Of a stretch of 64,000 bases of DNA, positions 12,551 to 43,114 are shown in pieces. The notes under the pieces are model-generated. The model made no database searches. It saw only the letters and a list, made by a program, of their open reading frames with translations, and was not told where the DNA came from. Numbering within the stretch: the stretch's first letter is position 1; every line of letters begins with the position of its first letter. Both the position numbers and the translations under genes were made by a program. The stretch spans positions 1 through 64,000 of the forward strand of contig NIVC01001486.1 in the NCBI GenBank assembly GCA_002269645.1. The letters are read 5' to 3'. Source of the DNA: Macrostomum lignano (lineage: Eukaryota).

Positions 12551-14436
12551 TATGGGAGATTTCGGTACTTCGGTGCGAGGTACGGTGGATACTGCTGCTG
12601 TGGCAACAGCTACGGCTCGTTCGGTCCAGCCCCGGCAAGTGACTGCTCGCATCAATGCAAGGGAAACTCATCCCAAATTTGCGGTGGAAGCATGAGGAAC
12701 TCCGTCTACGAAAATATTTATAATTACGGTAAGAGGGACTTTTTCTGAAGCGAGTGTTGTTTCGTTTGTCATGGAGAGCACTGGACGTCAAAATGTCGTT
12801 ATGTGATAGATACAATAAATGTATATAGCATGCACGATAAGCAATTAATTAGGCCCTAGACAAACCTACTTGGAGCGTTCGGAGATTTTAAAGCTATTGG
12901 CCCTAATCGCCTATCGCCGGTCGGCGAGTCCTACCAGTCTTTCTCCAATAGTCACAGTACGGTACAAGGAAAGGAAGAACGCAGATGAACATGAACCGAA
13001 TAGATTTAGAGAGTGATAATCCTATATGATACAGACTGATAATTGGCTAGACGATTTAATTTGATTACTTCAAGTTACAAGCTTCAATGCAATTCGTGGC
13101 GCAGATAATTTCGAACTGATAATAGCGGAAAATGATAACGAGATAAACGATTAAAAATAACTTAGTTACGCAATGGCAAGCAGATCTCAGCTTGAAGAAG
13201 AAAAACCGAACAGGACCACGGAGAAGACTCCTAACCCCTGGCCTAAACCAGAACCTACACTCAAACGAGAGCCCTGCCGAATTGACCGTTCAACGGAGCA
13301 CTGACTAAATTCTATCAGCACTGCCCTTCAGTCTGACACTGAGGCCCTCAGGATCGAGGCCACGTACTTGGTCAAATCCGACAGTCTCTAACTAGACCGC
13401 GCTTGATAGCGACGACTTCAGACAGAAAGTTTGCCGTAGACGTTACGCTACAAGACTGAAGCGGTCGGGCGGGGACAAAAATATGGACCGGGGGTGATAA
13501 ACTCAAGCGCCTCAAAACGCGAACCAAAACAAGGGCGAGTGGCCGGAAAGCCGGGACAAAAATCAAAACCGGGGACGGAAAAACAGAAGTGAGATCTGAT
13601 TGCCAAACACTTTCATATATAGTCAGAGTCAAACCCTCAAAACCCCCCTCAAGCCGGGTGGTGGTCGTCTGGCCGGCCGATCGCTAAGCCGATTTGCACT
13701 GTGCCCGCGGCGCCAGGTAGACTTGGATTTTGCCGCGTGCCAGGGTCCAGGCCGGTTCTGATTGACTGGCCGCGCAAAGCTGGGGTTCGCAGAAAAACTC
13801 AACCCTCCGCTGAGTCACAAAATGGCGTTTGACTTCTAACCTGTTTACAAATTTAGATTTTAACTAACAAGAAAAAAAGTACATTAGACGGCGTGACTAA
13901 ATTGAAGCAAAATAATAATTAACAATATGAAAACTAATACAATCAATTAACTAACAAAATACACGCAAAAGATGCTCACACTACAGTTATCAGAATAGCA
14001 CTGATTAGTTTGTGCTGAAAATATTCTTTTTGAAACTCTATTGCGAATGCAAAAATTTTGAAAAAGTCATGTATAGCAATTCGCATTGAATAAATCATAT
14101 AGAAATGTCTATAAAAACACACTATCGATTGGGTCTGACTTTCTGTTTTAGTTGTGTTTTTCCTAAATTCTGTTTTAATTGAACTTTGTAGCTGGCCTAA
14201 CAGTGTCCAGGCTTCCAACTTCTGCCATGCCGAGCATCACAGCTTCACTGAGCTCCATCACCCACCGCAGCGTCTCTGCCAACAGCGCCATTGAGTGCGC
14301 TGCCGCCTGCCAGCGAAGCCCGGACTGTCAGGGCTGCGCCTTCGTGCCTTCGAACCGCATGTGCCACCTGCTGAGATTCACCGCTGTGCCCGCTGAGGTG
14401 TCCAGCGAGGCTGAGTGGGTCTGGATGAAGCTGTGA
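12551..14436 (+). pseudogene. WSC-PAN/Apple lectin-like gene A1, 5' half removed from this position by the Polinton insertion
   Basis: Exon 1 remnant 12551-12728 (YGRFRYFGARYGGYCCCGNSYG...), GT donor at 12729, AG acceptor at 14190-14191, exon 2 at 14192-14436 (SAIECAAACQRSPDCQGCAF...CHL). Confidence 0.9.
12800..13980. other. Unclassified insertion of about 1.15 kb in the A1 intron
   Basis: The A1 intron (1463 bp) aligns to the 278-bp A2 intron only at its ends. The insert has a GC-rich core and GCCATTTTG on the minus strand near 13825. Confidence 0.5.
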
Positions 14437-15453
14437 GGCTGCGAGGGTCTGAAGAACTGTCACTGTCCTACAACTATTCAGTCAAACGGAAGCCCTTTTA
14501 GACTTCAATATATTTTTATCAGTACTTTTTCTGCTACTGCAAGACTCTTGTACGTGCATTATGTAGTTTAATATGGTTTTAAGCAATTAAGGGCTTTTTA
14601 ATTTAGGATAAAAAGTTAAACGTTGTTGTCGTTGGGTTAATAAGTTGTTAGGTTAGGAACAGAACCAAAATAATACGCAAAATAAAAAACTTTCGAAGTG
14701 ACACCTAAGTCGAGCGCACGGCTTTATAAAAGGATTTCAACCTAAAAAACCGTGAAGGATCACGATTTTAATGTTGCTTTTTTGCATTTTGATTATTCGT
14801 GAGAAACTCCATGGAAAATGCCAGCAGTGTAACCAAAGTTGCAGAGGCAGGTTCTGCGATAACAACCATACGGTCGGCTTTTTTCATCAAGGAAGCTGGA
14901 AACGTTTCCCTGCATTCAGCCGTTAGAAACGGATCCCATAGGCTTCTGTACTGATGCCTGTGAATCAGCCAAGGCAGAGCTGGCTGGTTCCTCAGCATTC
15001 GCGTCGGCATTCGATTCGATGAAGAATTAAAGAGTGCGATTCCGCAAGTCGGGAGAAATCGAATGGATCTTCTTACGTATGCATTCATTCTATTGTTCTC
15101 ACAAATCGATTCCTGTCCACCAGAGCGGCAGAAAGGGAGGGGGTTCAGTAAAAATCGACAGGACTTGTGAATATGCATGTATCCGTTGCATTAATTAGCA
15201 AGAAATTCAAATGTCTGAGTAAATAGATGAAGGTGAAAAAGCAAACTCGTGGACATATTTACCATCCACTGCAAGGAAGCGGGAGTTGCCGCTCTCTGTC
15301 GGAAAGCAGACAGCTGCTCAGACGTGTGTGCTACTCGTAGATTAAACATTTGCTCGCGTTCGATTTCCATGGTGACGGCTTTGCTTGTCTCATCGGGAGG
15401 AAATTCCAGATAAAATCATCGTTATCAGCTGCCACCTGTAAACATCTGAGGCG

Positions 15454-17360
15454 ATGCAGAGATTAAAAATACCAGCAACTGATCTCCTGCTGTTCTGGGC
15501 AGCCCTTGCTAGGCTGTGCACCGCTTCCGTACCACCCAACCGCAGGGTATTCGCTACGTGGGTTGCTTTAGGAGGACGTTAGAGGCCCGTATCACTGGAA
15601 CACTTGCTGCTATCGGTAGTTTTATTGAAAGCAATTCGCTCACTGTAAAATTTTTTGCAGTCACATCTGCACCTACGGGCGGTTCCGATACTTTGGACTT
15701 CTATTCGGTTCGTTATGCTTGTAGAGAACTGTTAGTTATATCGTAATCAACTACTTAAAGTAATATTCTAAGAAAATCCTATTAAACTTGCAATCTATTT
15801 TTAGAATGAGTCATGTTCAAACACAAGTGACTCAGTGCCCTACGTAGGACCAACGTTTATTTGATCCAAGGACCGGATTTTAGCAGCTGTGTTTGCTTAA
15901 TTCAATATGTGGTAATGCTCAGACATTCATGACTGCTAATTCAAACATGTATGACCTAAGTAAATATCTGATCTCAAGCCGTTTTTTCGCGAAAATTTTG
16001 CTATAAATATAAGTGAAAATCCGAGTAAAAAATTCAGACCCGGAGCGGTCTCAAAGAAGACTTTGAAGACAAAGAAAAGAAGACCAATCTCTGAGGGACG
16101 ATTCTTGTCCAATTGGTAAGCGCTTACCAAATTTAGTTTTTTGTTGCTAGCGTTAATTAATAAGTTTATTATAGTTGCTTACGAGAGCCTTTTTGCCGGC
16201 CCATTTAAGAAAGACCTCCTTGTTTTTTTTATTAGAGGCAGGGGGGTTGTGTGCACCCGGGCGCAATTTAAGCGTCATTGGCACACAACCGGCGAGAGGC
16301 ATTACTGCCCATTCCGCCGACTCCCCTGAGCAGGCATACAAGCGCGCGGATACGTTACGCAGGCACACACTCACACAGGAGTGTACAGCGGCCCTAACTT
16401 TATCAATTGTTAGGCATGTACACTTCACTGCGCCTTGGGGGGGTTGGCTCTCAAGGCCGTTAATTGCACAAGCGAGCCAAGCCAAGATTCCAATCCAGCC
16501 CCAAATTAATGTGGCTGCACTTGGAATCGAGCCTGGGTCGCTGGCACACCAGAGCAGCTGCGCTACCGCTGGGCTACGGCCCCCTCGACCTCCTTGTTTC
16601 TTAGGATATATATTCCCAGAGGATGTATTTTATTAATTTGAGTTATCCGTCACGTTTCGGACGTAACGAAGAAGACGCCCTTCATGAGGACCTACTACAG
16701 AAACTCAGAGAATTCAATTTTTAATTTCGAGCTCGAGGACCGTCAGGACTTCTGATTCGCTCTTGTTTTTGCCCGATCAACAGATAAAGTGAAGGACTCC
16801 AGGAGACAACAGTTCACAGAAGCCAATTATCACTACTACAGTTCAGCAAGTGTCCCCAGTGTCTAGAAGTGGGAGTTTTCGAGTGACTGATCGCCACTGT
16901 TAAAACTCTTCACGCTCCTGCGGCCGGACTAGCGGATCCAACTGGAAGGAATTGGAGAGCAACTGTCAATCCGAATGCAGCGGCAATGTGTCTCAGATGT
17001 GCGGCCTTGAACTGAGCGACTCTGTTTATGAAGTAATTTACCCTGTGGGTAAGTAGGGGGGGGGGGCGTCTATTTGACTGCTCAGTAAGAAAAGCATATC
17101 TTTGACAATAATTGGTCTTAAAAATTGATCGAATGTCCTATCCTAACGCGTGTATCACACTCAGATCGCTCTCTGCTGACATGGCTTCAAAGGGGCAAAA
17201 AATGCCGAGCATTTCAAGCTTTATGAAACTGAGATCCGTAACTGACCTTAGCGCAGAAGTCAGCGAAGTCATCGAGTGAGCTGCCACCTGCCAGAGAAGC
17301 CCGGACTGTCTGGGCTGCACCTTGAGTCTGTGAGGTTCAGTGGGTCTGGATGAAGCTGTG
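15454..17360 (+). pseudogene. WSC-PAN paralog B1, pseudogene
   Basis: ATG 15454 MQRLKIPATDLLLFWAALARLC (signal-like). Shifted frames give IRYVGC and CSHICTYGRFRYFG. A degenerate PAN exon lies at about 17160-17360. Confidence 0.8.
16390..16584 (-). mobile_element. tRNA-derived SINE, family 2
   Basis: Minus strand reads GGGGCCGTAGCCCAGCGG (A box) ...GGCTCGATTCC (B box). A second copy is at 24.4-24.6 kb. Confidence 0.75.
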
Positions 17361-17870
17361 AGGCTGAGTGGATCTGGATGAAGCTGTGAGGCTGAGCGGA
17401 TCTGGATGAAGCTGTGAGGCTGAATGGGTCTGGATGAAGCTGTGAGGCTGAGCGGATTTGGATGAAGCTGTGAGGCCGAATGGGTCTGGATGAAGCTGTG
17501 AGACTGAGCGGATCTGGATGAAGCTGTGAGGCTGAATGGGTCTGGATGAAGCTGTGAGACTGAGCGGATCTGGATGAAACTGTGAAGCTGAGTTGGTCTG
17601 AATGAAGCTGTGAAGCTGAGTGTGTCTGGATGTAGCTGTGAGGCTGAGTGGGTCTGGATGCAGCTGTGAGGCTGAGCGGATCTGGATGAAACTGTGAAGC
17701 TGAGTGGGTCTGAATGAAGCTGTGAAGCTGAGTGTGTCTGGATGCAGCTGTGAGGCTGAGTGGGTCTGGATGAAGCTGTGGAGGCTGAGTGGGTCTGGAT
17801 GAAGCTGTGAGGCTGAGTGGGTCCGGATGAAGCTGTGAAGCAGAGTCGGTCTGGATGAAACTGCCAGGCT
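17334..17870 (+). repeat. 28-bp minisatellite GAGGCTGAGTGGGTCTGGATGAAGCTGT, about 19 copies (B1 3' end)
   Basis: Directly visible. Confidence 0.95.
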
Positions 17871-18319
17871 GATTCATCTCTAATGAAAAACTGTTAGAAG
17901 GATTCTGAGCAAGAATTATAGCGGAATTATTAAAAATAGACGTGACTCAGGCTTTGACTATTATTTATGCCTTATTGTTTTTAACGCTATCAAGAATAAC
18001 TACTGAAAATGCAATGTCCAGGGAAAACGTTGTGGTTCTACTAAAAATACTAATAAAGGATTGTTACATTCAAAATTAAATTTACTAGCTCAATTTAAAC
18101 TTTTGGATTTAATCTAGTTGTTAAAACATTCTGAACCTGACATGATATACGCAACTAAGTTCAGTTTTTAACACTAAACTCGCGCATCTCAAATTCTGGA
18201 CTGCCGAATACAATATGAAACGAAACTATTCAAGTGAATAGATTGAAAAATGTATTATTACAGAGCGACAGCGCTCAGAACACAGTTGTATTTCCGAAAC
18301 AGATCGAAATGAAACGCAA

Positions 18320-18582
18320 AGCTTAATGGGACGACAGCTCAGCCGCAGCAATTGCGCGGCGCATCTGAAGGCTGCGTACGGCTGTTCAGTCCAAGGACTG
18401 GGGGTTCGCCACAGCCTCAATTACCCCAGCTAATGCTGGAATCCATTTTACAGCTGGGTGAACTGAAGCAATGCAGAGTTAAGTGTCTTGCTCAAGGACA
18501 CAAATTTTTCTGAGTGGATAGGGAATCGAACCCCCGACCTTCAAGTCGTGAGTCCGACGATCTAACCACTAGACTACAACCC
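18320..18582 (-). mobile_element. tRNA-derived SINE family 1 copy
   Basis: Reverse complement of 10936-11200 with high similarity. Confidence 0.88.
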
Positions 18583-18829: not shown

Positions 18830-19776
18830 ATGTTTTCAAAAAGCTTTTCTGTAGGCTACTTGCTGATGTGGGCAGCGTTCGGAAGCTGCTTGACTTCCGT
18901 GCCGCCTCATCCGACGGCATTCCGCTACATCGGTTGCCACGTGGATAAAAGGGACCCCGACATGACCGGTCTCGTTGGAGTCGCTACATTCGGTCCGTAT
19001 TCGACATATCCCGGATGGCCATCTCTTTTGCGAAACGCTTCAATGACGCTGCAGCTGTGCAGCCAGATCTGCGCTTATGGGAGATTTCGATACTTCGGTG
19101 CGAGGCTCAGTGAATACTGCTGCTGTGGCAACAGCTACGGCTCGTTCGGTCCAGCCCCGGCTAGTGACTGCTCGTATAAATGCAAGGGAAACTCGTCTCA
19201 AATCTGCGGTGGAAACATGAGGAACTCCGTCTACGAAAATATTTATAATCACGGTGAGAGGGACTTTTTCTCATGCAAATTTTGTTTTGCCTGTCAGGAC
19301 GGCAACGTCGTTAAAACATCAAAAACCGTAACACAAAGCAGGATTTTTTATGATTTCATACTGAAAATATTCTTTTTAAAACCAAACTGCAAATTCCAAC
19401 TGGAAAAGTCAGGGCAATCAGTGTTCGTTGAATAAATCCCAGATATTTCCATACATTCGTAAACAGATTTATTATTTCTATAAGTTTTTGAGTAAAAATT
19501 TCTAAATTCTGTTTTAATACAACATTTGTAGCTGGCCAAGCAGTGACCAAGCTGCCAGCTTCTGCCATGCCGAGCATCTCAGCTTCACTGAGCTCCATCA
19601 CCCACAGCAGCGTCTCTGCCAAGAGCGGCATCCAGTGCGCTGCCGCCTGCCAGCGAAGCCCGGACTGTCAGGCCTGCGCCTTCGTGCCTTCGAGCCGCAT
19701 GTGCCGCCTGCTGAGATTCACCGCTGTGCCCGCTGAGGTGGCCAGCGAGGCTGAGTGGGTCTGGATGAAGCTGTGA
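18830..19776 (+). CDS. Secreted WSC + PAN/Apple domain protein A2 (exons 18830-19253 and 19532-19776; 222 aa)
   Basis: Signal-like N-terminus. WSC pattern YIGC..D...MTLQLCSQIC...YFG...CCCG..YG...C...C.GN..Q.CGG..RN.VY. The phase-1 GT/AG intron joins in frame to a 4-Cys PAN/Apple exon. Confidence 0.9.
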
Positions 19777-20215
19777 GGCTGAGTAGGTCTGGATGAAGCT
19801 GTGAGGCTGAGTAGGTCTGGATGAAGCTGTGAGACTGAGTGGGTCTGGATGAAGCTGTGAGGCTGAATGGGTCTGGATGAAGCTGTGAGGTTAAGCGGGT
19901 CTGGATGAAGCTGTGAGGTTAAGCGGGTCTGGATGAGGCTGTGAGAATGAGAGGGTCTGGATGAAGCTGTGAGGCTGAGTGGGTCTGGATGAGGCTGTGA
20001 GAATGAGAGGGTCTGGATGAAGCTGTGAGGCTGAGTGGGTCTGGATGAGGCTTTGATAATGAGAGGGTCTGGATGAAACTGTGAGACTGAGTGGGTATGA
20101 ATGGGGCTGTGAGACTGAGCGGGTCTGGATGAGGCTGTGAGAATGAGAGGGTCTGGATGAAACTGTGAGACTGAGTGGGTATGGATGGAGCTGTGAGGCT
20201 GAGCGGGTCTGGGTA
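19747..20215 (+). repeat. 28-bp minisatellite, about 17 copies; the first unit encodes the A2 C-terminus
   Basis: Period of 28 measured (19747 to 19775). Confidence 0.95.
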
Positions 20216-21229
20216 AACTATCACTGTTTCTACAATAAAAAAACTCAAACAGTAGTCCTTCTAGGCCTCAAAAGTATTTTATGTTCTATCAGTACATATC
20301 TTGCTGCCATTGTAACAAGCTTGTACGTGCATAATGTTCTGTAATATGGTTTTAAGAGATTCTTTATTTTCCATTTAAGATAAAATGTTGAAAGTTTATC
20401 TCGTTGGGTTGATACGCTTCATCAACGATACCGAATTATAACTAGGAAACTAATAAACTACCTTTAAGTCACACTTAGTGACGGAATTGCCGAACGCATG
20501 GCAGTATAAATGAATTTCAACCTAAAGAACCGTGAACTAACACGATCTTAATGTTGCTTCTTTTGCATCATGATTTTTCGTGAGAAAATAAAGATAGAAA
20601 GGAGTTCCGCTTTGACGGCACAAATCTATGCATTCTTTACAGGAGCTCAACTTTACTGCAAAACGGTAGGACAAACTACGAAATAAAAAATAAAATATTC
20701 AATGGAAACTGAAAGCAGAGCATCCAAAGTAGCAGAGGTGCCTCTGTGACAGCAACCGTTGGACTGCTTTTGCTGTCCTGAACAAAAGCGTCACTTTAGT
20801 TACAATCTTTATCAGCTCGCTTGGTCCACTTCCTTTATCCAGGAAGCTGGAAAAGTTTCCCTGCATCCAACCGTGAGAAAACAAATCCCAAGACTTCCTT
20901 ACTGATGCCTGCGAATCAACCAAAGGAGATCTGTCACTCCTCACCCGCGTCGGAAGTGAAGAATGCGACTCTGCAAGTCAGGAGAAATCGAATGGATCTT
21001 CTTCCATCAGCATTCATTCTCTTTTGTTCTCCCAAATCGATCCCTGGCCACCGCAGCGGCAGTAAGGAGAGGGGGTTGGGTAAACTTCGACAGGACCTGT
21101 GAATATACGCATAACTGTTGCAAAGATTAGCAAGAAATTCACATTTCTGAGTAAATAGATGAAGGTAAGAAATCGAACTCATGGACTGCCGACACAGATT
21201 TATTATCCTCAGATTTATTATCTGAGGCA

Positions 21230-21686
21230 ATGCAAAGAAAAAATACTAGCAATTAATCTCCGGCTGTTCTGTGCAGCTCTTGGTAGGCTGTGCAACGCTT
21301 CCCTGCACCGAAATGGCAGGGCATTCGCTACGTCGGTTGCTATGCGGAAAGTTACAGAGATCTGTGGGTAAGTCCGAGCTTGAATACTGGGTAAAAGACG
21401 TAAATTTGACAATAATTGATCTTATTAATTGATCAAATTAGTATCCTATCACATGCACCACACTCAGATCCCTCTCTGCTGACAACGCTGCAAGTTGCTG
21501 AGATCCGTCACCGACCTTAGCGCAGAAGCCAGCAGTGTCATCCAGCGCGCTGCCGCCTGCCAGCGAAGCCCGGACTGTCAGGGCTCTGCCTTCGTGTCTT
21601 CAAGCCGCTTGTGCCGCCTGCTGAGATTCACCGCTGTGCCCGCTGAGGTGGCCAGCGAGACTGAGAGGATCTGCATAAAGCTGTGA
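21230..21686 (+). pseudogene. WSC-PAN paralog B2, internally deleted pseudogene
   Basis: Signal-like LFCAALGRLC and GIRYVGCYAESYRDL, after which most of the WSC is missing. The PAN remnant reads AAACQRSPDCQGSAF...LCRLLRF. Confidence 0.8.
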
Positions 21687-22012
21687 GGCTGAGTGAGTCT
21701 GGATGAAGCTGTGAGGCTGAGTGGGTCTGGTTGAAGCTGTGAGGCTGAGTGGGTCTGGATGAAGCTGTGAGGCTGAGCGGGTCTGGATAAAGCTTTGAGG
21801 CTGAGCGGGTCTGGATAAAGCTGTGAGGCTGAGTGGGTCTGGATGAAGCTGTAAGGCTGAGCGGGTCTGGATAAAGCTGTGAGGCTGAGCGGGTCTGGAT
21901 GAAGCTGTGAGGCTGAGTGGGTCTGGATGAAGCTGTAAGGCTGAGCGGGTCTGGATAAAGCTGTGAGGCTGAGCGGGTTTGGATGAAGCTGTGAGGCTGA
22001 GTGGGCCTGGAT
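21657..22012 (+). repeat. 28-bp minisatellite, about 13 copies
   Basis: Directly visible. Confidence 0.95.
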
Positions 22013-22227
22013 AAAACTATCACAGCACTGTGAGGCTGCTTGAGTCCTGATGAAGCTGCGATTCTGATCTATCTGATGACAAGCAGGGATAAGGGTTCTG
22101 AGTTATAATCATGTAGGAATTAGCGAAATCTGAATGTTGTGTATTTTTATGTGCTTTATGTCCTATTATTTGTTAAGCTTTTTCGAATAACAGCTGCAAA
22201 TGCAATTTTTTGATAGGATCTTTCTTC

Positions 22228-22938: not shown

Positions 22939-25011
22939 ATGCAAGCGCCTATAATTGTAGTTGCCTTCCTGTCTGCATGGGTGCCGTTGCTGGCTTCTGA
23001 GCCGCCCCAGTTTCGAGAAGTTCGCTACATCGGATGCTTCGCTGACAGCAGAAGTAACAGCGATCGAGACCTGCAAGGACTGGAAGGCGTCATTGCGTTA
23101 GACCGGTACACAGTTGACCGCAAGTACAGCGCCTTCGTCAAGAGCAGGAAAATGACACTGCAGAAGTGCAGCCGGATCTGCTCATACGGTCGGTTCCGCT
23201 ATTTTGGTGTGCAAGCAGCTTTTTTTTGCTGCTGCGGATCTGCGTACGGGTCGCTTGGCGCGGTCGAGGAGAGAAAATGCGCTGCTCTTTGCAGTGGGAA
23301 CGCGTCGCAGGTGTGCGGTGCCAGCTGGACCAATTCCATCTTTGAAATCGTCTATAAGCCTAGTAGGTAATCGCTTATTGCATGCATTGAAAGGTGGCTA
23401 AACTCACAAAACATGTCAGTTTCACTGAAGCTTGAATGTTGAGCTTCCTAATTTTATCTGAAACAAGTATGGGTATGAAACAAGAAATGCTACCGGAGGC
23501 CTGAAATAAAGCAAATTTTATACTGATACTGCTTTTGTCCGACTAAAAATCTCATAGAATAAAGATATAGATGGGGCCATAGACAGCACTGAGAAGCCTG
23601 ACTGAGAGACAGGCAAACCTGGAAGGCCGCTTAAAAAATTGAAGCGTATTCCAAGTTGAATTTCTAGTTTAGCTGTGAATATTCAGGGTTAAACTAAGAA
23701 TGAGTGAAATTAAAGATCGAGCCCTAGTTAAACTGACCGTTTGAATTAAAAGCACTTAAACAAAGCTGTACTTCAATTGTTATTCCTACTACTTCTAGGG
23801 CTTTTCATAACTAAAATAATTAATCATCTTACTAAATTTTATTAAACTACTAACCGCAGTAGTGAAATTCAGGTATAGGTCCTAAATTTCCGCGACGCTC
23901 AATAAATTAAACGATTCTTCCGTCTTCCTAGTTAAATCTTCCGTCTTCTGACTTACCTGACTGGCTGAGGCTAACTTGGAAGAAGTGGGTAATTTAACTA
24001 GGAAGAGGCAATCAAATTTTTAGGCGCGCGGGAGTGGACGTCTAAACTTGCAATTTACATTTATAAATAAGTTGATTAACACCTAAGTGTGATTGTGTTT
24101 TAAAAACTTAAATAGAACTGGGGGAATAACCATACAATAACAATCCGTAATGCTAATGTGAAGGCAAGCTCTGACAACTGTGTAGAATCTAACAGAAAGG
24201 CACATCGATCTCTATGGCTGTAAATTGCCAGTTTGGATGTCCACTTAAAGGTTTGCCTGTCTCTCAGTCTTGGGCTGTCTATGGCCCAAACTATCTTTAT
24301 TCTGTGGGGTTCTAACTTTGGATTTGACCCTCTTACCGTGAAGAAACCCTTTTCACGGTGCAAGTTGGTGTTGGTGTTCCTTTTTGTTGATTGTCGATTT
24401 TTTGAAAAACAACCTTTTATAAAATGGTTAGGAATTTACACTTCACTGCGCCTGGGTGATAGGCCTTCAAGGCCGCTAATTACACGAGCAGAGCCAAGCC
24501 GAGATTCCAATTTAGCACCAAATTAATTTGACCGCACTTGGAATCGAGCCTGGGCCGCTGGCACATCAGAGCGCCGCTAGTAGAGTACTAGTCTAAGGAC
24601 CCCTGAAATCGACAGGATCTGGGATATGCCTTAATGGATTCTTTCAGTCAACCATAAGATTCTTTATGCCTTAATGGGACATTCATCATTTGAAAACTAC
24701 AAAACCTACGTTTGGTTGACTGATTGATTCCTATAATTTTGAGTAAACCTTGCAATTCTCCCACAGCTGAAAAAATCATGACCAAGCTACCAGTGACCGA
24801 CATGCCAAGCATCTCAGTCTTGGCGAGCGCTTCTGCCTATCGCAACTCCACGGCGAAGAGCGCCATCCAATGCGCCGCCACCTGCCAGCGAAGCCCGGTC
24901 TGTCAGGGCTGCGCCTTCGTGCCTTCGAGCCGCATGTGCCGCCTGCTGAGATTCGCCGCTGGGCCCGCTGAGGTGGCCAGCGAGACTGAGTGGGTCTGGA
25001 TGAAGCTGTGA
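22939..25011 (+). CDS. Secreted WSC + PAN/Apple protein C (exons 22939-23362 and 24767-25011; 222 aa)
   Basis: Signal peptide MQAPIIVVAFLSAWVPLLAS and a full WSC Cys pattern. The phase-1 donor A|GTAGGT and acceptor CACAG| join in frame. Confidence 0.88.
24430..24573 (-). mobile_element. SINE family 2, 5'-truncated copy in the gene C intron
   Basis: Similar to 16410-16550 (ACACTTCACTGCGCC...CACTTGGAATCGAGCCTGGG). Confidence 0.72.
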
Positions 25012-25560: not shown

Positions 25561-28500
25561 ATGCTGAAACTCTGCGCTCTGCTGCTCTGCTGGGCAGCCG
25601 CTGCTGCGGTGCCGCCTCAACCGTTGGAGTTTCGCCACCTCGGCTGCTACGTGGATGGCGCTGTTGGCAACCGAGATCTTGTAGGACTGGAGGGGGTGAA
25701 AAAGTTCGGACAGTTTGAGACTCACCCTCTCGCCCCAGCGTTCGGTTTCGATGACGCCAAGATGACACTGCAACTGTGCAGCCAGATGTGCTCTTACGGC
25801 CGATTTCGCTACTTTGGAGTTCAGTCTGCGGCCTTCTGCTGCTGCGGCTCGGCCTATGGATCGCAAGGCATCGCATCGGCTGGCCACTGCAGCTTGGCTT
25901 GCAGCGGAAACTCGTCTCAGATTTGCGGTGGGGCTTACAGCAATTCCATCTATGAATTGACTTACTCACCAAGTAAGCATTTTGGATTGACGCAGCTCTT
26001 TCATGCGTAAAAACAGGGTTCTTTAATTTAGCCAAAATACGACTTTAAAATGTCGTTTTTAAGTCCCCGTGATATTCGAAAGAGGATTTGAACTTAAGCG
26101 CGATTTGGAAGCCGTGAGTCCAGCAACCAAACCGCTGCAAAATTCTCACTATTCAGACCCAAAATAGACAAGAAAAGCGTAATTGATCTTTCTTCCACCC
26201 CGGCCGCTTCCGCATAGGACAAATGGGGAAAAATTGGGATTTCATGTGAACTTAAGGCTCTGAAATGGAAGCGGTGGCCGATTAAGCCGGTTTCTCTATC
26301 GGATCTCTCTACTGGACCGACAATGAGAGAAGAATCGTCGAAAACCGCATCTCTCTATCATTTGGGCTCCCTGAATGGGATAAATGGGGAAAATGGGGAT
26401 TTCATGTGAACTTAAGGCTCTGAAATGGAAGCGTTGGCCGATTGAGCCGGTTTCTCTATCGGATCTCTCTACTGGACCGACAATGAGAATCTGATTGATG
26501 AAGCAGGCCGGCAAAGCTGCCTTGAGTCTTTATGTTAAAGAATGTTTTAATGATTTCTGTAACTATATTTAACGTTAAAATATCTTTTTAGTATCTGTAT
26601 TAGACTTTTTTGAACAGGTTTAATGAAATATTAAAATGCACGATTTTAGTACTGTATGAATACAGTGCATTTGCAAATAATGGGAACCAAAAGTGCATGA
26701 GCAAATAGTAACAAGCAAAAGTACATGGAACAGAGCAAGTAGTGGCAAGCAAAAGTTCATAGGTAGGTATAAGTCTTTCGAATGTTGGAGTGCATCGCAA
26801 GGAAAAACTAAAACTTGTCTAGCTCGGGTCTACGATCTAGTGAAAGCACGATTAGTCTTTCTTTTGCACAACTACAGCAGCGATATTTTGTGCATCCCGG
26901 AGAAACGGATTGCAGTTGGGCTCAATTCTGGAATCGCCAATCAACCACCATACATTGTCATGCCAAACACTGGTAGTGTAGTGCCCGCGATGGAGAGATC
27001 TGCCATAGTGGCATATCACTATCACAGGACTGCCGAAGTCGGAATTACTCTCAGCTCTTGGTGAGTACCGTATTTGGGTGTTGATTTTTTCGGTATTATA
27101 GTTTTCTGGAGTCCTGCTGAAGTAAATAATTGCAAACTTGGCCGCTGATGGAATAATCTGCTTTCAATCAAGCCTTCGCATCCTAATTGGCCGCACTGCG
27201 AAATGCGTGGTCGCAGTCGTTCTTCCAAAAGATCGTAAAGGCTAATCGGAGCCCTGCTGTACTCTGAGAGAGGAACGCAAAGAATTTGTTCACTGATTGT
27301 TCCTGTTGGAATCGAGGCTGCGCTGTAGCCACAACGTCGACAATTACGGAGCGCAGTAACATCTGCAAGGGCGCCATTAGCAACCGAGAGAGTCGAAAGC
27401 AGGGCTTCCAAGAACTCCAGAAAGCAGTGCTGTTCACCAGCAGCAAATCTGCCGGGAAGATGCGCCTGATAATTCCTTGTACTTCTGCGGCGGAAGTATT
27501 TTTTAGAGCTAGCATTTGATGAAAAAGTAGCTCTACAGATCTTTGCAAGTCGCTAGCTATGTCCCGTCTCATTAATGGGCCCTTCTGCTCCATCCAGTAA
27601 AGAAGCTGAATGGCAGAATTGGCATAGCAGTCTGCTCCGCTATTTCTTAGTCCACAGAGAGGCTGCGGCTCTGAACTTCTTGATGATGTTTGTTTGGCAT
27701 CCTTTCCTTTGAACGATGCTCTTGACGAGGCTCTGTTCTAACATTTTCCTCAGCAGGTAGAGAGGAGTAAGGATTAGCGTTGAGGCTTTTAGGAAGCTGT
27801 GTATCAACGAAGCGGCGCTCAGGATATCGTTGGCGAAAGGAATCTGGGTCGTAGGCATAATGACCTAGGAGCAAAAGAACTGCCATTACATGGCAGTCAC
27901 AGCCAGCTGTTCGGCTACCCACTTTGGACGAGGAGTAGTAGGCATGTAGCCTCCTTAGACCGGCATCGTGGAATCCAAAAGGGTTTCCATTCGGTAAATC
28001 GTTGAGGCGAAGAAGGACTCGATATGTTCGAGATGTGTGCCTCGAAAACACAACGGATATAAATATCCACGACGGTTGCCCGTTGCCGAATTTCTTTTTT
28101 CCAGTTCCTTGCCTGCTGTTCTTGCCGGAATTTCCAGCAGCGCATCGATTGAGGCAGCTGCGATGCAAGGTCTTCAAGCTCTAACAACGTATCACCGGCG
28201 AAATTCTCAAGCGTGCGTTGCACCTGGATGTTTTGGATATAGCTTTCAGACTGCTGTACATGAAATGGTCCCACACTTACTTCCTGAAGGTTTTCTATCT
28301 CAATTCGAGGAAAGCCTGTGGACTCAGGATCTAGCACATCAACTGGTGACCAGCGCCTCGACCCTTCGATAGGAGTTCGGGTCGCGTCACACAGGTAGTT
28401 CTCACCTTCAATCGGATCGAATTCGTTGCTGAGAAACATGCGCCTGGTAAAATTCTGACCAAACTAAAAAAGTGAGCTGTCATTCCATGACTTTGGCAGC

Positions 28501-29566
28501 GTTTTATTCAGTGGGAATCCAATGTGCGAGCGGTTGTATTTGGCAATACAGTTGTCGATAATGACATCCAGCCGACTAGATGTACTGAATTCAGCTGGCT
28601 GCTGCCACTGGTATGGCTCATGCCGCTCATGAATACACCTGTTCTGCTTGATTGCGGCGAACGCGCACTCAACAGAAAAGCGGGAGAGCGTAGCCAGCCT
28701 ACTGGTATTTGACTCAATAGCAGTCAGTGAACGGGACGATCCTCAGACTGGATTCTTTGAGCCATAAGTTCACATGAAATCCCCATTTTTCCCCATTTAT
28801 TCCATTCAGGGAGACCAAATGATAGAGAGATGCGGTTTTCGACGATTCTTGTCTCATTGTCGGTCCAGTAGAGAGATCCGATAGAGAAACCGGCTCAATC
28901 GGCCAGCGCTTCCATTTCAGAGCCTTAAGTTCACATGAAATCCCCATTTTTCCCCATTTATCCCATTCAGGGAGCCCAAATGATAGAGAGATGCGGTTTT
29001 CGATGATTCTTCTCTCATTGTCGGTCGCGGCGCACGGCATCGCATCGGCTGGCCACTGCAGCTTGGCTTGCAGCGGAAACTCGTCTCAGATTTGCGGTGA
29101 AACTTACAGAAATTCCATCTATGAATTGACTTACTCACCAAGTAAGCATTTTGGATTGACGCAGCTCTTTCATGCGTAAAAACAGGGTTCTTTAATTTAG
29201 CCAAAAAACGACTTTAAAATATCGTTTTTGAGTCCCCCGTGATATTCGAAATTTTAGAAATTGGAAAAAAGGCTGGCTGTTAAGAATACTATATTAATAT
29301 TTTCAACCAACCCTTCTACAGTCGATCCGGTGATGCCGAAACTGCCCGCGACGTCTCTGCCGAACATCACAGCCTCCGCGAGCTCCGTCACTCACCGCAG
29401 CATCGTAGCCAGCAGCGCAGTTGAATGCGCCACCATCTGCTACGGCAGCCCGGACTGTCAGGGCTGCGCCTTCGTGCCTTCGAGCCGCATGTGCCGCCTG
29501 CTGAGATTCGCCGCTGTGCCCGCTGAGGTGGCCAGCGAGGCTGAGTGGGTCTGGATGAAGCTGTGA
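25561..29566 (+). CDS. Secreted WSC + PAN/Apple protein D1 (exons 25561-25972 and 29322-29566), intron enlarged by a transposon
   Basis: Both exons are open, and the phase-1 A|GTAAGC donor and CTACAG| acceptor join in frame. The close paralog D2 has the same exons with a 202-bp intron. Confidence 0.8.
25863..26081 (+). repeat. About 220-bp direct duplication (second copy 29032-29251) of the exon 1 3' end, splice donor and intron start, flanking the transposon
   Basis: Near-identical GGCATCGCATCGGCTGG...GATATTCGAAA at both places. Confidence 0.9.
26852..27670 (-). pseudogene. Ubiquitin-specific protease (peptidase C19/USP) domain, frameshifted
   Basis: Manual translation: Cys box LCGLRNSGADCYANSAIQLL (about 27600-27660), EQHCFLEFLEALL (QQDxxEF-like), CRRCG and a later Cys pair, then His box VICHYGRSLHRGHYTTSVWHDNVWWLIGDS (about 26920-27020). 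Stop at 26852-26854. Confidence 0.8.
27647..28742 (-). pseudogene. C-terminal half of a PIF/Harbinger-ISL2EU-type DDE transposase with a degenerate SWIM-like tail
   Basis: Manual translation from 28742: LTAIESNTSRLATLSRFSVECAFAAIKQ (third catalytic Glu motif R..VE...IK), then FPRIEIENLQEVSVGPFHVQQSESY, FSRHTSRTY and YYSSSKVGSRTAGCDCHVMAVLLLLG, across frameshifts. Confidence 0.72.
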
Positions 29567-29920
29567 GGCTGAGTGGGTTTGGATTGGATGAAGCTGTGAG
29601 GCTGAGTGGGTATGGATGAAGCTGTGAGGCCGAGTGGGTCTGGATGAAGCTGTGAGGCTGAGTGGGTTTGGATTGGATGAAGCTGTGAGGCTGAGTGGGT
29701 ATGGATGAAGCTGTGAGGCCGAGTGGGTCTGGATGAAGCTGTGAGGCCGAGTGGGTCTGGATGAAGCTGTGAGGCTTAGTGGGTTTTGATGAAGCTGTGA
29801 GGCTGAATGGGTCTGGATGAAGCTGTGAGGCTAAGTGGGTCTGGATGAAGCTGTGAGGCCGAGTGGGTCTGGATGAAGCTTTGAGGCTGAGTGGGTTTGG
29901 ATGAAGCTGTGAGGCTGTGG
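29537..29920 (+). repeat. 28-bp minisatellite, about 13 copies (D1 3' end)
   Basis: Directly visible. Confidence 0.95.
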
Positions 29921-30939: not shown

Positions 30940-31254
30940 AATTGATAATAATAATAAATGATTACACCTGCCCCAATTGGACCAGATGTGCAACCGACAG
31001 CTCAGCAGCAGCAATCGCAAGGCGCATCTGAAGGCTGCGTTCGACTGTTCAGTCCAAGAACTGGAGGGGGGGGGGGTCGTCACACACATACCCTCGATTA
31101 CCCCTAGCTAGCACCCGTCTTACAGTTGTGTGAACTGAAGCAATGTCGAGTTAAGTGTCTTGCTCTAGGACACAAATTATTCCGAGTGGGTCGAGAATCG
31201 AACCCCCAACCTCAGTCGTGAGTCCGACGCTCTAACCACTAGACTACAGCCCCC
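30940..31254 (-). mobile_element. tRNA-derived SINE family 1 copy with (ATT)n tail
   Basis: Reverse complement of the 10936 copy, with a TTATTATTATT tail at about 30945-30958. Confidence 0.85.
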
Positions 31255-34681: not shown

Positions 34682-35522
<841 letters not shown>

Positions 35523-35796
35523 CTATTAACACATCAGAGATCAGAGTATTAATATATAGATTAATATAATATATCCGAGTAAGTATCAGAGATTTGCCTG
35601 AAATCTTCTTGTCTTGCTACTCACTAGTGGTCGATCTCTTTTTCCTACTAGGGCAAAACCTCAGACAATCAGGCACAGAATTGGTGGGTGATTCCTCATT
35701 GGCTTCTTGCAGCAAATATATTGCTTGAATTTCCTACCTGAATCAGAATAAGCGTCTCAGAAACTGCCGTTCGGCCACTCTCTGGGATTTTCCCCA

Positions 35797-36673
35797 ATGC
35801 TGAAAATTTGCGCTCTGCTGCTCTGCTGGGCAGCCGGTCCCGGACGCTGCGCCGCTGCTGCGGTGCCGCATCAACCGTTGGAGTTTCGCCACATCGGCTG
35901 CTACGTAGATGGCGCTGTTGGCAACCGAGATCTTGTAGGACTGCAGGGGGTCAAAAAGTTCGGACAGTTTGAGACTCACGCTGGTGCCCCAGCATTCGGT
36001 CACGATGACGCCAAGATGACACTGCAACTGTGCAGCCAGATGTGCTCTTACGGCCGATTTCGCTACTTTGGAGTTCAGCTCAACAGCTTCTGCTGCTGTG
36101 GCTCAACCTATGGATCGCACGGCATCGCACCGGCTAGCGACTGCAGCTCAGCTTGCAGCGGAAACTCGGCTCAGATTTGCGGTGGAGCTTCAAGAAATTC
36201 TATCTATGAACTGACTTACTCACCAAGTAAGCGTTCCGGATTAACGCAGCTCGTACATGCATGAACACGGGTTATGTTAATTTAGCGATGGACGACTTAA
36301 AAGCACTCTGTTTTCCTTAAATGCAGTTCGCATTGGAAGATTTAAGCATCAATATTTGAATTAATCTGACCAGTAAAAATATAAAAAGTAATATCGGCAT
36401 TCCATATTTCCAACCAACTCTTCCGCAGTCGATCCGGTGATGCCGAAACTGCCCCTGACGTCTCTGCCGAACATCACAGCCTCCGCGAGCTCCATCACTC
36501 ACCGCAGCATCGCAGCCAGCAGCGCAGTTGAATGCGCCACCATCTGCTACGGCAGCTCGGACTGTCAGGGCTGCGCCTTCGTGCCTTCGAGCCCCATGTG
36601 CCGCCTGCTGAAATTCGCCGCTGTGCCCACTGAGGTGGCCAGCGAGGCTGAGTGGGTCTGGATGAAGCTTTGA
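35797..36673 (+). CDS. Secreted WSC + PAN/Apple protein D2 (exons 35797-36226 and 36429-36673; 224 aa)
   Basis: Signal peptide, full WSC, and a phase-1 GT/AG intron in frame. Close paralog of D1. Confidence 0.9.
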
Positions 36674-36822
36674 GGCTGAGTGGGTCTGGATGAAGCTGTG
36701 AGGCTGAGTGGATCTGGATGAAGCTGTGAGGCTGAGTGGGTCTGGATGAAGCTGTGAGGCTGAGTGGGTCTGGATGAAGCTGTGAGGCTGAGTAGGTCTG
36801 GATGAAGCTTTGAGGCTGAGCT
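36645..36822 (+). repeat. 28-bp minisatellite, about 6 copies (D2 3' end)
   Basis: Directly visible. Confidence 0.93.
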
Positions 36823-37777
36823 GGGTGAAGGCGCAAGAGACTGAAGTGCTGATTACGGAGGCAAATTACAATAAGCGTTATTAAAATCGATACATTGAAC
36901 CCCCCCCCCAAGAACATTGCTGCTGACCCTGAAATCGAGTTCCCCTTCTCTGTCCTAAATGAAGTTTCATGTTAACCCTGCAATGTTTTTTGAGTTGTGA
37001 GAAAAAATCTAATATCTGAGTAGCTATAGAAAAACAAAAAAATACAAATCTTTTTTAAAGCTTTCTGGCTATCGATAACAATTTAGGGTGATTCACTCTT
37101 AATTCTTATATTTTGCAGATATTCATGTATTTATAGCAAATACGCATGCACAATTGGATACATAAATATTACCTATCTCTGGATGTAGAAGAATGTGGGA
37201 TGCATAAGCTGTGAGTTCCCTTTAAAAAACAGAAAAGTTGAAGGAAGCTTTCTATTCATGTGCTGTCTATCTGTCCATCCCAAGTTTGGTTGTGCGATTC
37301 TGACTCTGTCATGAGAAAGCAAACCCAATGCATTGTCTGCAGGAGCTTTTCCGGTTGGTAGCTGATGCAGCGTTCAGCACCTGTGAATGCGTCTTTTAGT
37401 CAGACTCGTGAAGAGAAAGTTAGCTGCGGATGTTCGAGAAACAAAGAAGAAATACATCCGCAGATGCAAGCCGTTGTTTGCTTTTAAAATCGATGAAGAA
37501 GCGATGTTAAAAGAAGAATAGCTAAAAAACTTCTCTTTTTTAGAGTTAAAAATAGAGGAAAACCTTGGAGCTGCTTTGGCAATGGATGCTTTACTTCCAT
37601 GGACAGCTGAACTCCATGAAAGCTACACTTGATTTTCTTAGAAATCTTGGCCGGTGAAGAATGCGTGTGTTCTTGGTAGCACAGAAAATCCACAGAATGC
37701 TCAATCGCCTGATTAATAAAGGGATCTGATGCAGAACTAAAGTGCTAAGTAGCCAGCAGCCAGTTAAGCAGATAAAG

Positions 37778-37936
37778 GGCCGTATGCAGAAAGCCTAGTC
37801 CAGACTAGCTTACTCCGGACTTGGGTAGTTCAGTCTATAGTCTATGGTCTAGCTACCCTAGTTCTGTCTATAGTAGACCGGTCTAACTTTGTGTTTCTGC
37901 ATACCAAATCCAAGACTAAGCTTTCTGAATACGGCC
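37778..37936. mobile_element. MITE of about 160 bp with 23-bp TIRs
   Basis: GGCCGTATGCAGAAAGCCTAGTC ... GACTAAGCTTTCTGAATACGGCC (2 mismatches). No clear TSD. Confidence 0.7.
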
Positions 37937-40089: not shown

Positions 40090-40745
40090 AAGAACAAACA
40101 TTTTCTTGTTTTTATTAACTTTAATTTAATTGCCAATGCATTTCGATCCCTGTAGGTCATCGTCAGGGCAGTAATGAAATTGAAAATTTTAATAAACAGT
40201 TAAATAAATATACCTGTAATAAGTTGAATACACAATTTAAGTTAATGTACGTAGTTTTCAATTGAAAAAAAGTTCTAACACACGGTGCAGTAGCGTACAC
40301 TCCAAGCTAAAACACGCTGAGTTGGCGGCTGGCACCCCCCATAGCTAGCTGGCAGTTTAGGCTCGGGTTCTGATCTTTAGCCTCTAAAATGTTCAAGTGG
40401 TGCTTAGCTTCTAAGTCTAAGTTGTTTAGCCTCTAAGTGGTGCTGATGGCGGCAGGAATCGATAATCTTAAATAAATCAATCGGTTTGCTGTTACAGCAT
40501 TAGTCGCATGTGAGAAGGTGCTCCTGAATAGCAGATCTTTCGGTCCATGCAGTGCTCCTTGACCCTGGTGTACAAGTGTCGCTTAGTTTTCCGATGTACG
40601 AAATACTCTGGTCCCCAGAGCAATGAAATTTATAAACGACACCTGCAATGAGAGGCCGAGGCACACGAGACTTCAAGTTGCAGACATACTGGGACACCTT
40701 CTCCGTGCGGAACGTTATCCTAAGCTGCACGTTAAGGCTTTTTTG
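40090..40745 (-). mobile_element. Penelope-like retroelement 3' fragment (GIY-YIG endonuclease remnant plus terminal region)
   Basis: KSRVP...GVVYKFHC...SYIG....SAIQEH, then FKIID and NPSLNCQ. Downstream on the minus strand: CTGACGATGACC...CGAAA and AATAAA. Confidence 0.82.
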
Positions 40746-42155
40746 AACAGTTTTTCCACTTTTTTCTTGAACTCAAGTAGTCTTACTTGAAAAAACGTTG
40801 AAAATAATGACAATACCATTTTAACATGAAAAATCGATTAATGCTTCGCCTGAGCAGCATGAGGCACAAAATAGTGTGATTAGGACTTTCTCTGACACTG
40901 TTAGAGACCCAATCACTGTTTTAGTGTTGAAAATCGTGAAATTTCTACAAGCAATAAGAAAGACACAACATATCAAAATATAAACACTGGATCTGCCTCC
41001 TATCAAAAGCAATAACAATTTTATGCTGAAAAATTAAAACCTTCTATCTCTGCAGTGTATTTTTCGGCGAAAAGTGGCCTTCAAAACATTTACCATAGAT
41101 TTCGAGTGTTGCGTCCTTCTACTTAAGTTGTCCTTGTAGGTAAATTACGTGAGAGACTTCCATGCTGTGATTTAAATTGCTGCAGTTCTACTTTCAGTAG
41201 CTGATCGCTCACGCGACGAACAGATGATGCAGCCAGCTTCGTGAGGTTAGTTGAAACCAAAACTTTAAAACTGTGTGCACTGCTAACGAATGCAAGCGCT
41301 TGTCAGTCAATTGTAAGTGAGCCTACTCGTACCTGCTTGCTTCAGCCTCTCTTACAGAAACAAAAATTTCGCTTTTGTCTTCTATTATTAGACTAGCTCC
41401 TTGTATTTCGACAACGAATGCTAAAAGAACACTTTTGCAGTTGAAATAGTGAAGTCAGGCTGTTAAATAATTAACGATACTCAGATGGAGACGCAACTAT
41501 TCAGCGATTTCGACAATTCTTTCCATGAACAATTGTTTTTCTCTGCAGGGACTAGGAGAGAGCTTCTGAAGGGTTGAACCGCGGCTCGAAGATGAAGTCA
41601 TGCGTGACACGAGACAATTTTTGATAGGAAGTTTTGTCAGCTTTTGGCCAGCTTTCGGCCAGCCCCCAAGGCACAGCGATTAAACATGCATTTATGTGCT
41701 CAAGAGTCAGACAGAGTTGTCGTCAGTAAATGTCGCCGAAGTGCGATATCGCCAAAGGCGTTGTTCCAGTGTGCCCACAGGCCTCCTGCAAATATTACCT
41801 TTTCTATCTTAGAAAAGATGTTAAATAGGGCCCAAGGGCTGTCTCTCTGTCTGTCTATCTGCCTGCTAGCTCTATCCATACCTAGCACTGCAGTTTTTCG
41901 TTACACAACGCCTATATTAGTGAAATTGATTGAATTAAAACTCAGGAATGATAACCAAATCAACTCTCCATTTTTAACCAACTTCTTTAACTAATCATTG
42001 AATCTACGAATAACTCTAAAAGCTCGTCTAACAAAATGCTTCATCGTTTGATATTGCAAACTTTCGATTTATTTTATTCATAAAAGAATTTTTTCAATCC
42101 AACTCAAGCGATATAGAGTACTCTGCAAGACAGTTTGCATTACCACCATCAAACG

Positions 42156-43114
42156 TTAGTGCTTCATCCAGACCCACTCAGCCTCGCTGGCCACCTCAGC
42201 GGGAACAGCGGTGAATCTCAGCAGGCGGCACATGCGGCTCGAAGGCACGAAGGCGCAGCCCTGACAGTCCGGGCTTCGCTGGCAGGCGGCAGCGCACTCG
42301 ATGGCGCTTTCGGCAGAGGTTTTGCTGTGGGTGATGGAGCTCAGTGAAGCTGAGATGCTCGGCATGGCAGAAGCTGGCAGCTTGGTCATTGTTTGGCCAG
42401 CTAAAAAGTCGGATTAGAACAGAATTTAGGATAAAAAAACTAAAACAGGAAGTCAGTCCCAATCGAAAGTGTATTTTTATGGACATCTCTTTATGATTTA
42501 TTCAATTTGAATTGCTATCCATTCCATCTATTGCTATGCAAGTGCACAGACTATATTTTCAGCACAAGCCAAGTCATCACTGCTATTCTGCTTCTTGTGT
42601 CAGTTTTTGACCTTAAATGACATTATGACGTCCTTCCAGTGCTCTCCATGACAAGTAAAACAATATTTGCATCAGAAAATTTCCTCTCACTGTGATTATA
42701 AACATTTTCGTAGACGGAGTTCCTCATGTCTCCACCACAAATTTGAGATGAGTTTCCCTTGCATTGATACGAGCAGTCACTAGCCGGGGCTGGACCGAAC
42801 GAGCCGTAGCTGTTGCCACAGCAGCAGTATTCACCGAACCTCGCACCGAAGTACCGAAATCTCCCATAAGCGCAGATCTGGCTGCACAGCTGCAGTGTCA
42901 TCGAAGCGCCTTGCGCCATTGATAGCCATCCTGACACGGTTGAATACGGACCGAATGTAGCGACCCCAACGAGACCCGTCATGTCGGGGTCCGTAGTGTC
43001 CACGTAGCAACCGATGTAGCGGAATGCCGTCGGATGAGGCGGCACCGAAGTCAAGCAGCTTCCGAACGCCGCCCAAATCAGCAAGTAGCCGACAGAAAAG
43101 CTTTTTGAAAACAT
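42156..43114 (-). CDS. Secreted WSC + PAN/Apple protein A3 (exons 43114-42691 and 42400-42156; 222 aa), inverted
   Basis: Near-identical to A2 outside the variable patches, with a phase-1 intron in frame. It ends WMKH* and has no minisatellite. Confidence 0.9.

Follow-up and report, generated by a model that had tools for sequence, protein, structure and literature searches.

Macrostomum lignano serves as a model in research on regeneration and on sexual selection among hermaphrodites. Here we describe a group of small two-domain genes located on contig NIVC01001486.1 of the M. lignano genome assembly GCA_002269645.1, of which positions 1 to 64,000 of the forward strand were analysed and are referred to below as the window. 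There are eight loci of this family and they are found exclusively between positions 12546 and 43114, with none elsewhere in the 64 kb when the two exons of one copy are used as a tblastn query. The feature is genuine, being a tandem cluster in which a lineage-restricted gene occurs in eight copies, and the tblastn result bears out an original prediction, made from the DNA alone, that an eight-copy WSC-PAN cluster is present. The main new observation is a partial homogenisation of these genes that is tied to a minisatellite at their coding ends.

Gene models, encoded domains and relatives

All copies share a common gene plan. Exon 1 encodes a signal-peptide-like N-terminus followed by a WSC domain, a phase-1 GT-AG intron comes next, and exon 2 encodes a PAN/apple domain. 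When the junctions are read and the exons assembled, five copies (A2, C, D1, D2 and A3) have intact reading frames with predicted products of 218-224 amino acids. In these copies exon 1 is 412-430 nucleotides (nt) long, and the introns, which are all GT-AG and in phase 1, range from 202 to 3349 nt. Exon 2 contributes exactly 245 coding nt in each of the five and also in A1, which is truncated. These models agree with the earlier claims of five intact and two decayed copies (B and X), a phase-1 intron, a 245-nt second exon and a product of about 220 residues.

A2, C, D1 and D2 lie on the forward strand. A2 (18830-19776, 222 amino acids) comprises exon 1 at 18830-19253, a 278-nt intron and exon 2 at 19532-19776, wherein positions from about 19657 to 19776 form the homogenised 3′ segment considered below. 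C (22939-25011, 222 amino acids) has exons at 22939-23362 and 24767-25011, separated by a 1404-nt intron with the donor sequence GTAGGT. The exons of D1 (25561-29566, 218 amino acids) are intact and are located at 25561-25972 and 29322-29566 on either side of the 3349-nt intron, and those of D2 (35797-36673, 224 amino acids) are at 35797-36226 and 36429-36673 on either side of the 202-nt intron. A3 (222 amino acids) is an inverted A-type copy that runs from 43114 to 42156 on the reverse strand, with exon 1 at 43114-42691, a 290-nt intron and exon 2 at 42400-42156.

The defective copies are all on the forward strand. A1 (12546-14436) is truncated at its 5′ end, and retains an exon-1 remnant at 12546-12728 (codons ~83-141), a phase-1 intron of 1463 nt and an exon 2 at 14192-14436 that is open to its stop codon. 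B and X carry stops, frameshifts and deletions. In B (15537-17417), pieces of exon 1 lie in two frames with an insertion of ~1.2 kb between them, several in-frame stops are present, and an exon-2 remnant is found at 17202-17417. X (~21310-21686) lacks most of exon 1, of which a short remnant persists, and its exon-2 remnant at 21498-21686 has lost Cys codons. X is paralogous to B, and the two have diagnostic residues in common. A self-comparison reveals that the region containing A1 then B (12549-17743) is collinear with the region containing A2 then X (19074-22012), and therefore a two-gene unit has been duplicated.

The WSC identity of the exon-1 domain is clear from profile scores and a fold model, as had been predicted. 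All five intact copies score 45.2-50.4 bits against PF01822 (WSC) in Pfam, for which the gathering cut-off is 27.8 bits. The AlphaFold model of P0003, a near-identical public protein, has a predicted local distance difference test (pLDDT) score of 76 for the whole protein, and its best matches in PDB are the WSC domains of Kremen1 and yeast Wsc1 (Foldseek probability 1.0, E-values 1.6e-4 to 7e-4), with apple/PAN structures next.

For the exon-2 domain, scores against PF00024 (PAN_1) straddle the gathering cut-off of 21.4 bits, with three copies above it (26.6, 25.4 and 23.0) and two just below it (21.3 and 20.6), and two relatives carry a PF00024/Apple annotation in UniProt. The WSC fold is itself PAN-like, and exon 2 was therefore modelled separately. 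The resulting model (pLDDT 82.7) has PDB neighbours that are exclusively PAN, apple or MANEC modules, including the HGF N domain, the plasminogen PAN domain, the lectin SML-2, apple-5 of TgMIC4 and the A4 domain of factor XI, with probabilities up to 0.99 and weak E-values of 0.01-0.1. A PAN/apple identity is acceptable given that the threshold-level Pfam score is backed by this fold model. Thus, the PAN/Apple assignment of the original prediction stands at the level of fold and for three of five copies by profile, but not by profile for the other two.

The N-terminal ~20 residues of the intact copies include a hydrophobic core (10-residue Kyte-Doolittle mean of 1.75-2.59), and all later 19-residue stretches remain at or below 1.31. 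Signal peptides were assessed from hydrophobicity alone, and on this measure the claimed signal peptide is plausible, with no later membrane-like segment. Each intact copy has 14 Cys after residue 24, and four Cys of the C-terminal domain are invariant across 25 family sequences. The mature product is probably a secreted, Cys-rich protein of ~200 amino acids. It is best described as two PAN-superfold modules, a WSC domain (exon 1) and a short PAN/apple domain with four core Cys (exon 2), that are connected by a Ser/Thr-rich linker. The protein had been proposed to be two-headed, and two domains are indeed present, but because the WSC fold is PAN-like the heads are two modules of one superfold.

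In comparison with human Kremen1 (PDB 5FWS/5FWU/5FWV) and Wsc1 (PDB 7PZ2), the exon-1 domain passes the Pfam WSC cut-off, matches in fold and keeps the eight WSC Cys. However, the cluster proteins lack the kringle and CUB domains of Kremen1 as well as the Ser/Thr-rich stalk, membrane anchor and cytoplasmic tail of Wsc1, and they add one extra Cys (as part of a CCC motif) and the C-terminal PAN module. The exon-2 domain resembles the PAN/apple domains of HGF N, plasminogen, factor XI/prekallikrein, Sarcocystis SML-2 and TgMIC4 apple-5 in its near-threshold PF00024 score, in its four invariant core Cys and in a model that retrieves only such structures at the weak E-values given above. It differs from them in being shorter, with ~55 structured residues that cover positions ~10-57 of the 76-position model, and in a fifth Cys present in the clade of the cluster.

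The D1 product is 99.5% identical to UniProt entry A0A1I8J1U2 of M. lignano, which is N-terminally incomplete, with one difference over 205 residues and an identical exon junction, and this assigns the window to M. lignano. More distant relatives were sought by a single-sequence search, by a profile search of 1.84 billion representatives and by a named profile search, and all three agree. Proteins that cover both domains in one unit of ~200 amino acids are found only in M. lignano, save for a few environmental sequences and one Nematostella WSC protein. These exceptions reach 82-96% query coverage at 27-28% identity, and two of the environmental ones (356-375 amino acids) are annotated as WSC plus PAN_4. 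The searches support a gene family restricted to Macrostomum, and the claim that it is lineage-specific stands apart from these few low-identity exceptions. The phase-1 intron is kept in two unlinked M. lignano genes, namely Mlig013640.g1 (exon 1 of 427 nt, intron of 78 nt, exon 2 of 245 nt) and Mlig003631.g5 (412, 111 and 233 nt).

D-type and related genes are present in two independent M. lignano annotations, and D-type proteins are already UniProt entries under the name ‘WSC domain-containing protein’. The statement that no characterised family has this architecture is correct in that these entries are uncharacterised, but the proteins themselves were already on record. A and C appear to be two subfamilies that are unannotated so far. 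A literature search with the family’s Mlig gene identifiers found no paper.

Three further M. lignano records deserve mention. P0004 (UniProt/UniParc) combines a WSC exon of the D type with an exon 2 of the A type, and P0019 (2673 amino acids, 7 matched units) and P0021 (1074 amino acids, 5 units) both have the appearance of models merged across other tandem arrays. These records suggest that the M. lignano genome has more clusters elsewhere and that exons may have been exchanged there. Relatives annotated as kinases or G protein-coupled receptors were considered as receptor forms of the family and were set aside. In these, the WSC-PAN part is C-terminal to the kinase, which suggests that the kinase-annotated relatives are merged neighbouring gene models.

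A near-identical 3′ end in diverged genes

The genes are mosaics, near-identical from copy to copy over the last ~120 coding nt and synonymously saturated over the remainder. Between subfamilies, divergence is 39-45% across the 5′ ~500-545 nt and 1.7-9.8% across the final 116-156 nt (best-breakpoint test, Fisher p of 1e-13 to 1e-22), and a sliding window places the switch in divergence ~40 codons before the stop. Synonymous divergence (dS) in the WSC exon between A, C and D is 1.4-3.2 or is not computable because of saturation, and dS in the last 52 codons, which form part of the PAN domain, is 0.09-0.25. The same contrast extends to the unlinked Mlig013640.g1, which differs from the cluster genes by 41-46% in its 5′ part and by 7.5-11.7% in its 3′ part. 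The invariant 245-nt exon of the original prediction is part of this 3′ homogenisation phenomenon.

The ratio of nonsynonymous to synonymous divergence (dN/dS) for the WSC exon between subfamilies is 0.14-0.28, and the coding sequence is under purifying selection. The recent pairs A2-A3 and D1-D2 have a dS of 0.10-0.15, and their dN/dS (0.46 and 0.68, respectively) lies above that of the old comparisons. These elevated values derive from small counts and fit either relaxed or diversifying selection.

A 28-bp minisatellite is located behind five copies (B, A2, X, D1 and D2) and comprises 6.5-19.4 units. The array starts 30 nt before the stop codon, which spans a unit boundary, and the unit GAGGCTGAGTGGGTCTGGATGAAGCTGT (from the A2 array) encodes the last nine residues EAEWVWMKL plus the stop. 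All arrays are given in the forward orientation. The one behind B (17328-17872) has 19.4 units, the one at A2 (19747-20212), which begins 30 nt before the A2 stop, has 16.6, and the one behind X (21657-22012) has 12.7. Those at D1 (29537-29917, 13.2 units) and D2 (36644-36826, 6.5 units) begin inside the coding ends of these genes. There are just ~1.4 units after the coding end of C. In A3, the likeness to the other copies stops inside the last codon, the stop codon is different (TAA) and the minisatellite is absent. Exon 2 of Mlig013640.g1 is followed by 17.8 units of the same 28-bp repeat, and both this repeat and the 245-nt exon are absent from Mlig003631.g5, which is more distant. Long antisense open reading frames (ORFs) run across the minisatellites and were dismissed, because by our own estimate a 28-nt unit is free of stops in three frames by chance in ~1 of 4 cases.

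The 3′ end is read as concerted evolution because constraint at the protein level is not enough to hold synonymous sites identical. The responsible process would be gene conversion or unequal exchange, most likely promoted by the repeat. One possibility is that the minisatellite, starting as it does in the last nine codons, seeds repeated conversion or exchange of the 3′ end. In that case, the C-terminal half-PAN module of the family would stay constant and the WSC head would diversify. Birth-and-death evolution, as originally claimed, is apparent from the eight copies, the three subfamilies with saturated WSC-exon dS and the three defective copies, but it does not describe the homogenised last ~120 coding nt. 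The cluster therefore combines birth-and-death at the 5′ end with what is probably concerted evolution at the 3′ end.

There is a known precedent for such a pattern. The human fetal G-gamma and A-gamma globin genes have undergone partial gene conversion, with a tract boundary marked by a simple-sequence repeat in intron 2. The cluster genes are similar in having a sharply bounded, near-identical tract that abuts a tandem repeat in otherwise diverged paralogues. However, their repeat, a 28-bp minisatellite, derives from the coding end itself, the tract spans part of a protein domain, and it is common to at least three old subfamilies and an unlinked gene. The cluster offers, within single genes, a clean contrast of homogenised with independently diverged sequence. 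There is also a practical consequence. Probes, primers, double-stranded RNA or short reads derived from the last ~120 coding nt or from the repeat-bearing 3′ end would match every paralogue, and therefore expression and knock-down work needs the 5′ WSC exon.

Possible roles of the proteins and origin of the shared 3′ end

We consider it moderately likely, taking all parts together, that these genes are a Macrostomum-restricted tandem family of secreted WSC-PAN proteins whose 3′ ends are homogenised via the minisatellite. The proteins would act outside the cell as glycan- or protein-binding parts of a gland secretion. Such an extracellular binding role is suggested by the domains, the lectin function originally proposed is a reasonable, if putative, reading, and we infer carbohydrate binding by the WSC domain from the family name alone. 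The leading candidate tissue is the prostate, which produces seminal fluid, because no other recognisable class of proteins is as large as the WSC-domain one among the M. lignano transcripts limited to this gland. [quoted passage not shown] In addition, several seminal-fluid candidates are WSCD2-like (PMC6953679) and one prostate transcript has two WSC domains (PMC4490696). A WSC-PAN family is hereby added to a species in which WSC proteins hold this position in the prostate secretome.

Several observations weigh against one part or another of this interpretation. The PAN_1 score is under the Pfam cut-off in two of the five intact copies. For the A and C subfamilies, identity to proteins in the collections searched does not exceed 63%, and exact look-ups of the window proteins in assembly and protein collections gave no match. 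The 36 published primers for 18 seminal-fluid candidates have no match in the window at up to 3 mismatches, and none of the Mlig gene identifiers of these candidates is among those of the WSC-PAN family. More distant paralogues, too, show strong protein-level conservation of the homogenised segment, and therefore selection contributes to the homogeneity of the 3′ end. Finally, C and A3 have a near-identical 3′ segment yet no long array, and for this reason a causal role of the repeat is proposed with caution.

A more specific version is that the proteins are made in the prostate gland, are transferred at mating as seminal-fluid proteins, and diversify under post-mating sexual selection. This would be consistent with the prevalence of WSC-type proteins among prostate transcripts described above, with small proteins that have a secretory-type N-terminus and are encoded in lineage-restricted tandem arrays, and with the raised dN/dS between recent duplicates. 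The published candidates (e.g. Mlig-pro46, Mlig-pro63 and RNA815_80.4; PMC5977470, PMC6953679, PMC4490696) are similar with regard to species, WSC domain, small predicted secreted products and multi-copy clusters, the last of these indicated by several Mlig gene copies listed per transcript. The 18 candidates that can be checked are other genes, several of which have two WSC domains instead of WSC plus PAN, and published candidates are absent from the close relatives of the WSC-PAN family. This comparison covers 18 of the 76 candidates, namely those with published primers and gene identifiers, and the other 58 are outside it. The supplement of PMC4490696, when searched for WSC together with PAN/Apple, yielded generic BLAST lists only. 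In view of the zero overlap in primers and identifiers, we hold the seminal-fluid version to be tentative and rather doubtful.

Perhaps the proteins are instead secreted lectins for pattern recognition, mucus, epidermis or another non-reproductive gland. Glycan binding by WSC and PAN/apple modules is known from other systems, and SML-2, a galactose-binding PAN lectin, and TgMIC4 apple-5 are among the Foldseek neighbours. Tandem expansion accompanied by pseudogenes is also typical of immune-type families. However, the sequence itself gives no pointer to any tissue, and a literature search found no tie of M. lignano WSC proteins to immunity or mucus. A non-reproductive lectin role is unlikely in our assessment.

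In its boldest form, the preferred reading of a secreted family homogenised at its 3′ end would treat the minisatellite derived from the last nine codons as a recombination hub. Such a hub would keep the C-terminal PAN segment identical across old and partly dispersed paralogues and would leave the WSC head free to vary. This arrangement of constant tail and variable head might produce binding proteins that are possibly borne in the ejaculate of a sexually conflicted hermaphrodite. We regard this proposal as speculative and on the whole improbable.

A competing explanation for the same near-identity is selection on the nucleotides themselves, for example on an element of the mRNA that serves 3′ processing, localisation or regulation, with the minisatellite as a by-product. 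The presence of the segment in the copies without long arrays (C and A3) and in an unlinked gene fits such an element, and the protein-level conservation of this stretch extends to more distant paralogues. However, the 5′ limit of the near-identical tract varies between pairs, from 116 to 156 nt before the end of the coding sequence, as would the limits of conversion tracts. Furthermore, alignments indicate that identity carries on from the coding end into the non-coding repeat units, and the segment matches no Rfam family. Nucleotide-level selection is a distinctly improbable cause, and the homogenisation is better read as conversion or exchange near the repeat.

Lastly, it is very improbable that the intact copies are unexpressed relics that remain open merely through youth, since, despite the recent dates of A2-A3 and D1-D2 and a lack of transcript evidence for A2, A3 and C, the old and synonymously saturated subfamilies A, C and D have retained open frames, splice sites, 14 Cys and a dN/dS of 0.2-0.35, the true relics B and X adjoin intact copies and are visibly broken, and D-type and related genes are annotated independently twice.

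Truncation of A1 and other elements of the window

A1 is truncated next to a Polinton/Maverick-like element that, together with ~3 kb of repeats, occupies positions 1-12545 and abuts A1. The element is recognised from its Pfam matches and its left end is probably located beyond the window. It includes a gene for a protein-primed DNA polymerase B (3386-6557, reverse strand) that exists as three separate ORFs with at least two interruptions and scores 21 bits against DNA_pol_B_2, for which the cut-off is 25.8. The integrase (rve) gene is a single ORF (7818-8855, reverse strand; 36.8 bits, above cut-off), and a match to Peptidase_C5, an adenain-like protease, is also above cut-off (22.6 bits). 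There is an ORF similar to adenovirus core protein X (Adeno_PX, PF05829) at 7319-7801 on the reverse strand (29.9 bits), and the ORF at 8643-9386 on the forward strand encodes a phospholipase A2-like domain of the parvovirus type (PF08398, 50.8 bits). No capsid or packaging ATPase domain was recognised by Pfam in the part of the element that lies within the window.

Homology of A1 to A2 and A3 begins abruptly at ~12546. The last gene recognisable in the element is set apart from this junction by ~3 kb of repeats, and three direct repeats of ~53 nt are located at 12286-12511, to the left of A1. An inverted-repeat search of positions 1-13200 found no terminal inverted repeat pair, and the right end of the element was not established by that search, by a viral-contig scan, by PHROGs or by a protein search. 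The 5′ half of A1 exon 1 was not found within the window by tblastn. In a protein search, the ORF at 11461-11922 matched just five short ENA contigs. The original prediction held that one copy is split by a Polinton. The truncation and the element to its left are observed, and a split is plausible, but the inverted termini and the missing half of exon 1 are not found in the window.

A dispersed repeat of ~285 bp at 10936-11220 has further copies on the reverse strand at 18332-18582, 30973-31253 and 47296-47480. One copy is within the Polinton-like region and one is located 250 bp upstream of A2. The first 70 nt of the repeat score as a tRNA in Rfam (39.3 bits), and ARAGORN calls none. It looks like a tRNA-derived short interspersed element.

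The long intron of D1 contains an unclassified insertion of ~3 kb (26082-29030) with inverted-repeat ends of ~270 bp at 26217-26488 and 28759-29026. The insertion sits between two copies of a 220-bp stretch. The upstream copy (25862-26081) includes the 3′ end of exon 1, the donor site and the start of the intron, and its direct duplicate at 29031-29251 on the forward strand is 96% identical, directly adjoins the insertion and gives the D1 intron a second copy of the donor site. The ORFs of the insertion have no Pfam or PHROG match. Another repeat, of ~157 bp and 84% identity, is present both in the insertion that disrupts B (16399-16555) and in the long intron of C (24416-24572).

Between D1 and D2 there is an (ATCT)n microsatellite of ~211 units (34682-35526) that yields a spurious ORF of 304 amino acids. 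An ORF at 40500-40730 was considered by eye to be a GIY-YIG nuclease and was rejected, as it has no Pfam match. Remnants of a mariner/Tc1-type transposase are located just past the end of A3 at 45299-46627 on the forward strand, wherein an HTH_48-like ORF is followed by a Transposase_1 ORF (59 bits).

The right third of the window is dense in minisatellites with periods of 27-41 bp (44092-45087, 51252-52038, 54685-55639, 58245-58623, 59021-59571 and 62459-63920), none of which resembles the family’s 28-bp unit by eye. Two of them, with periods of 28 bp (44.1 kb) and 27 bp (59.0 kb), are mutually inverted copies at 86-90% identity, and the pair with a 31-bp period (54.7 kb and 62.5 kb) is ~87% identical. 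Segmental repeats of 360-640 bp, 94-97% identical, are also found outside the cluster, pairing 50686-51314 with 61630-62258 and 50827-51186 with 57541-57900.

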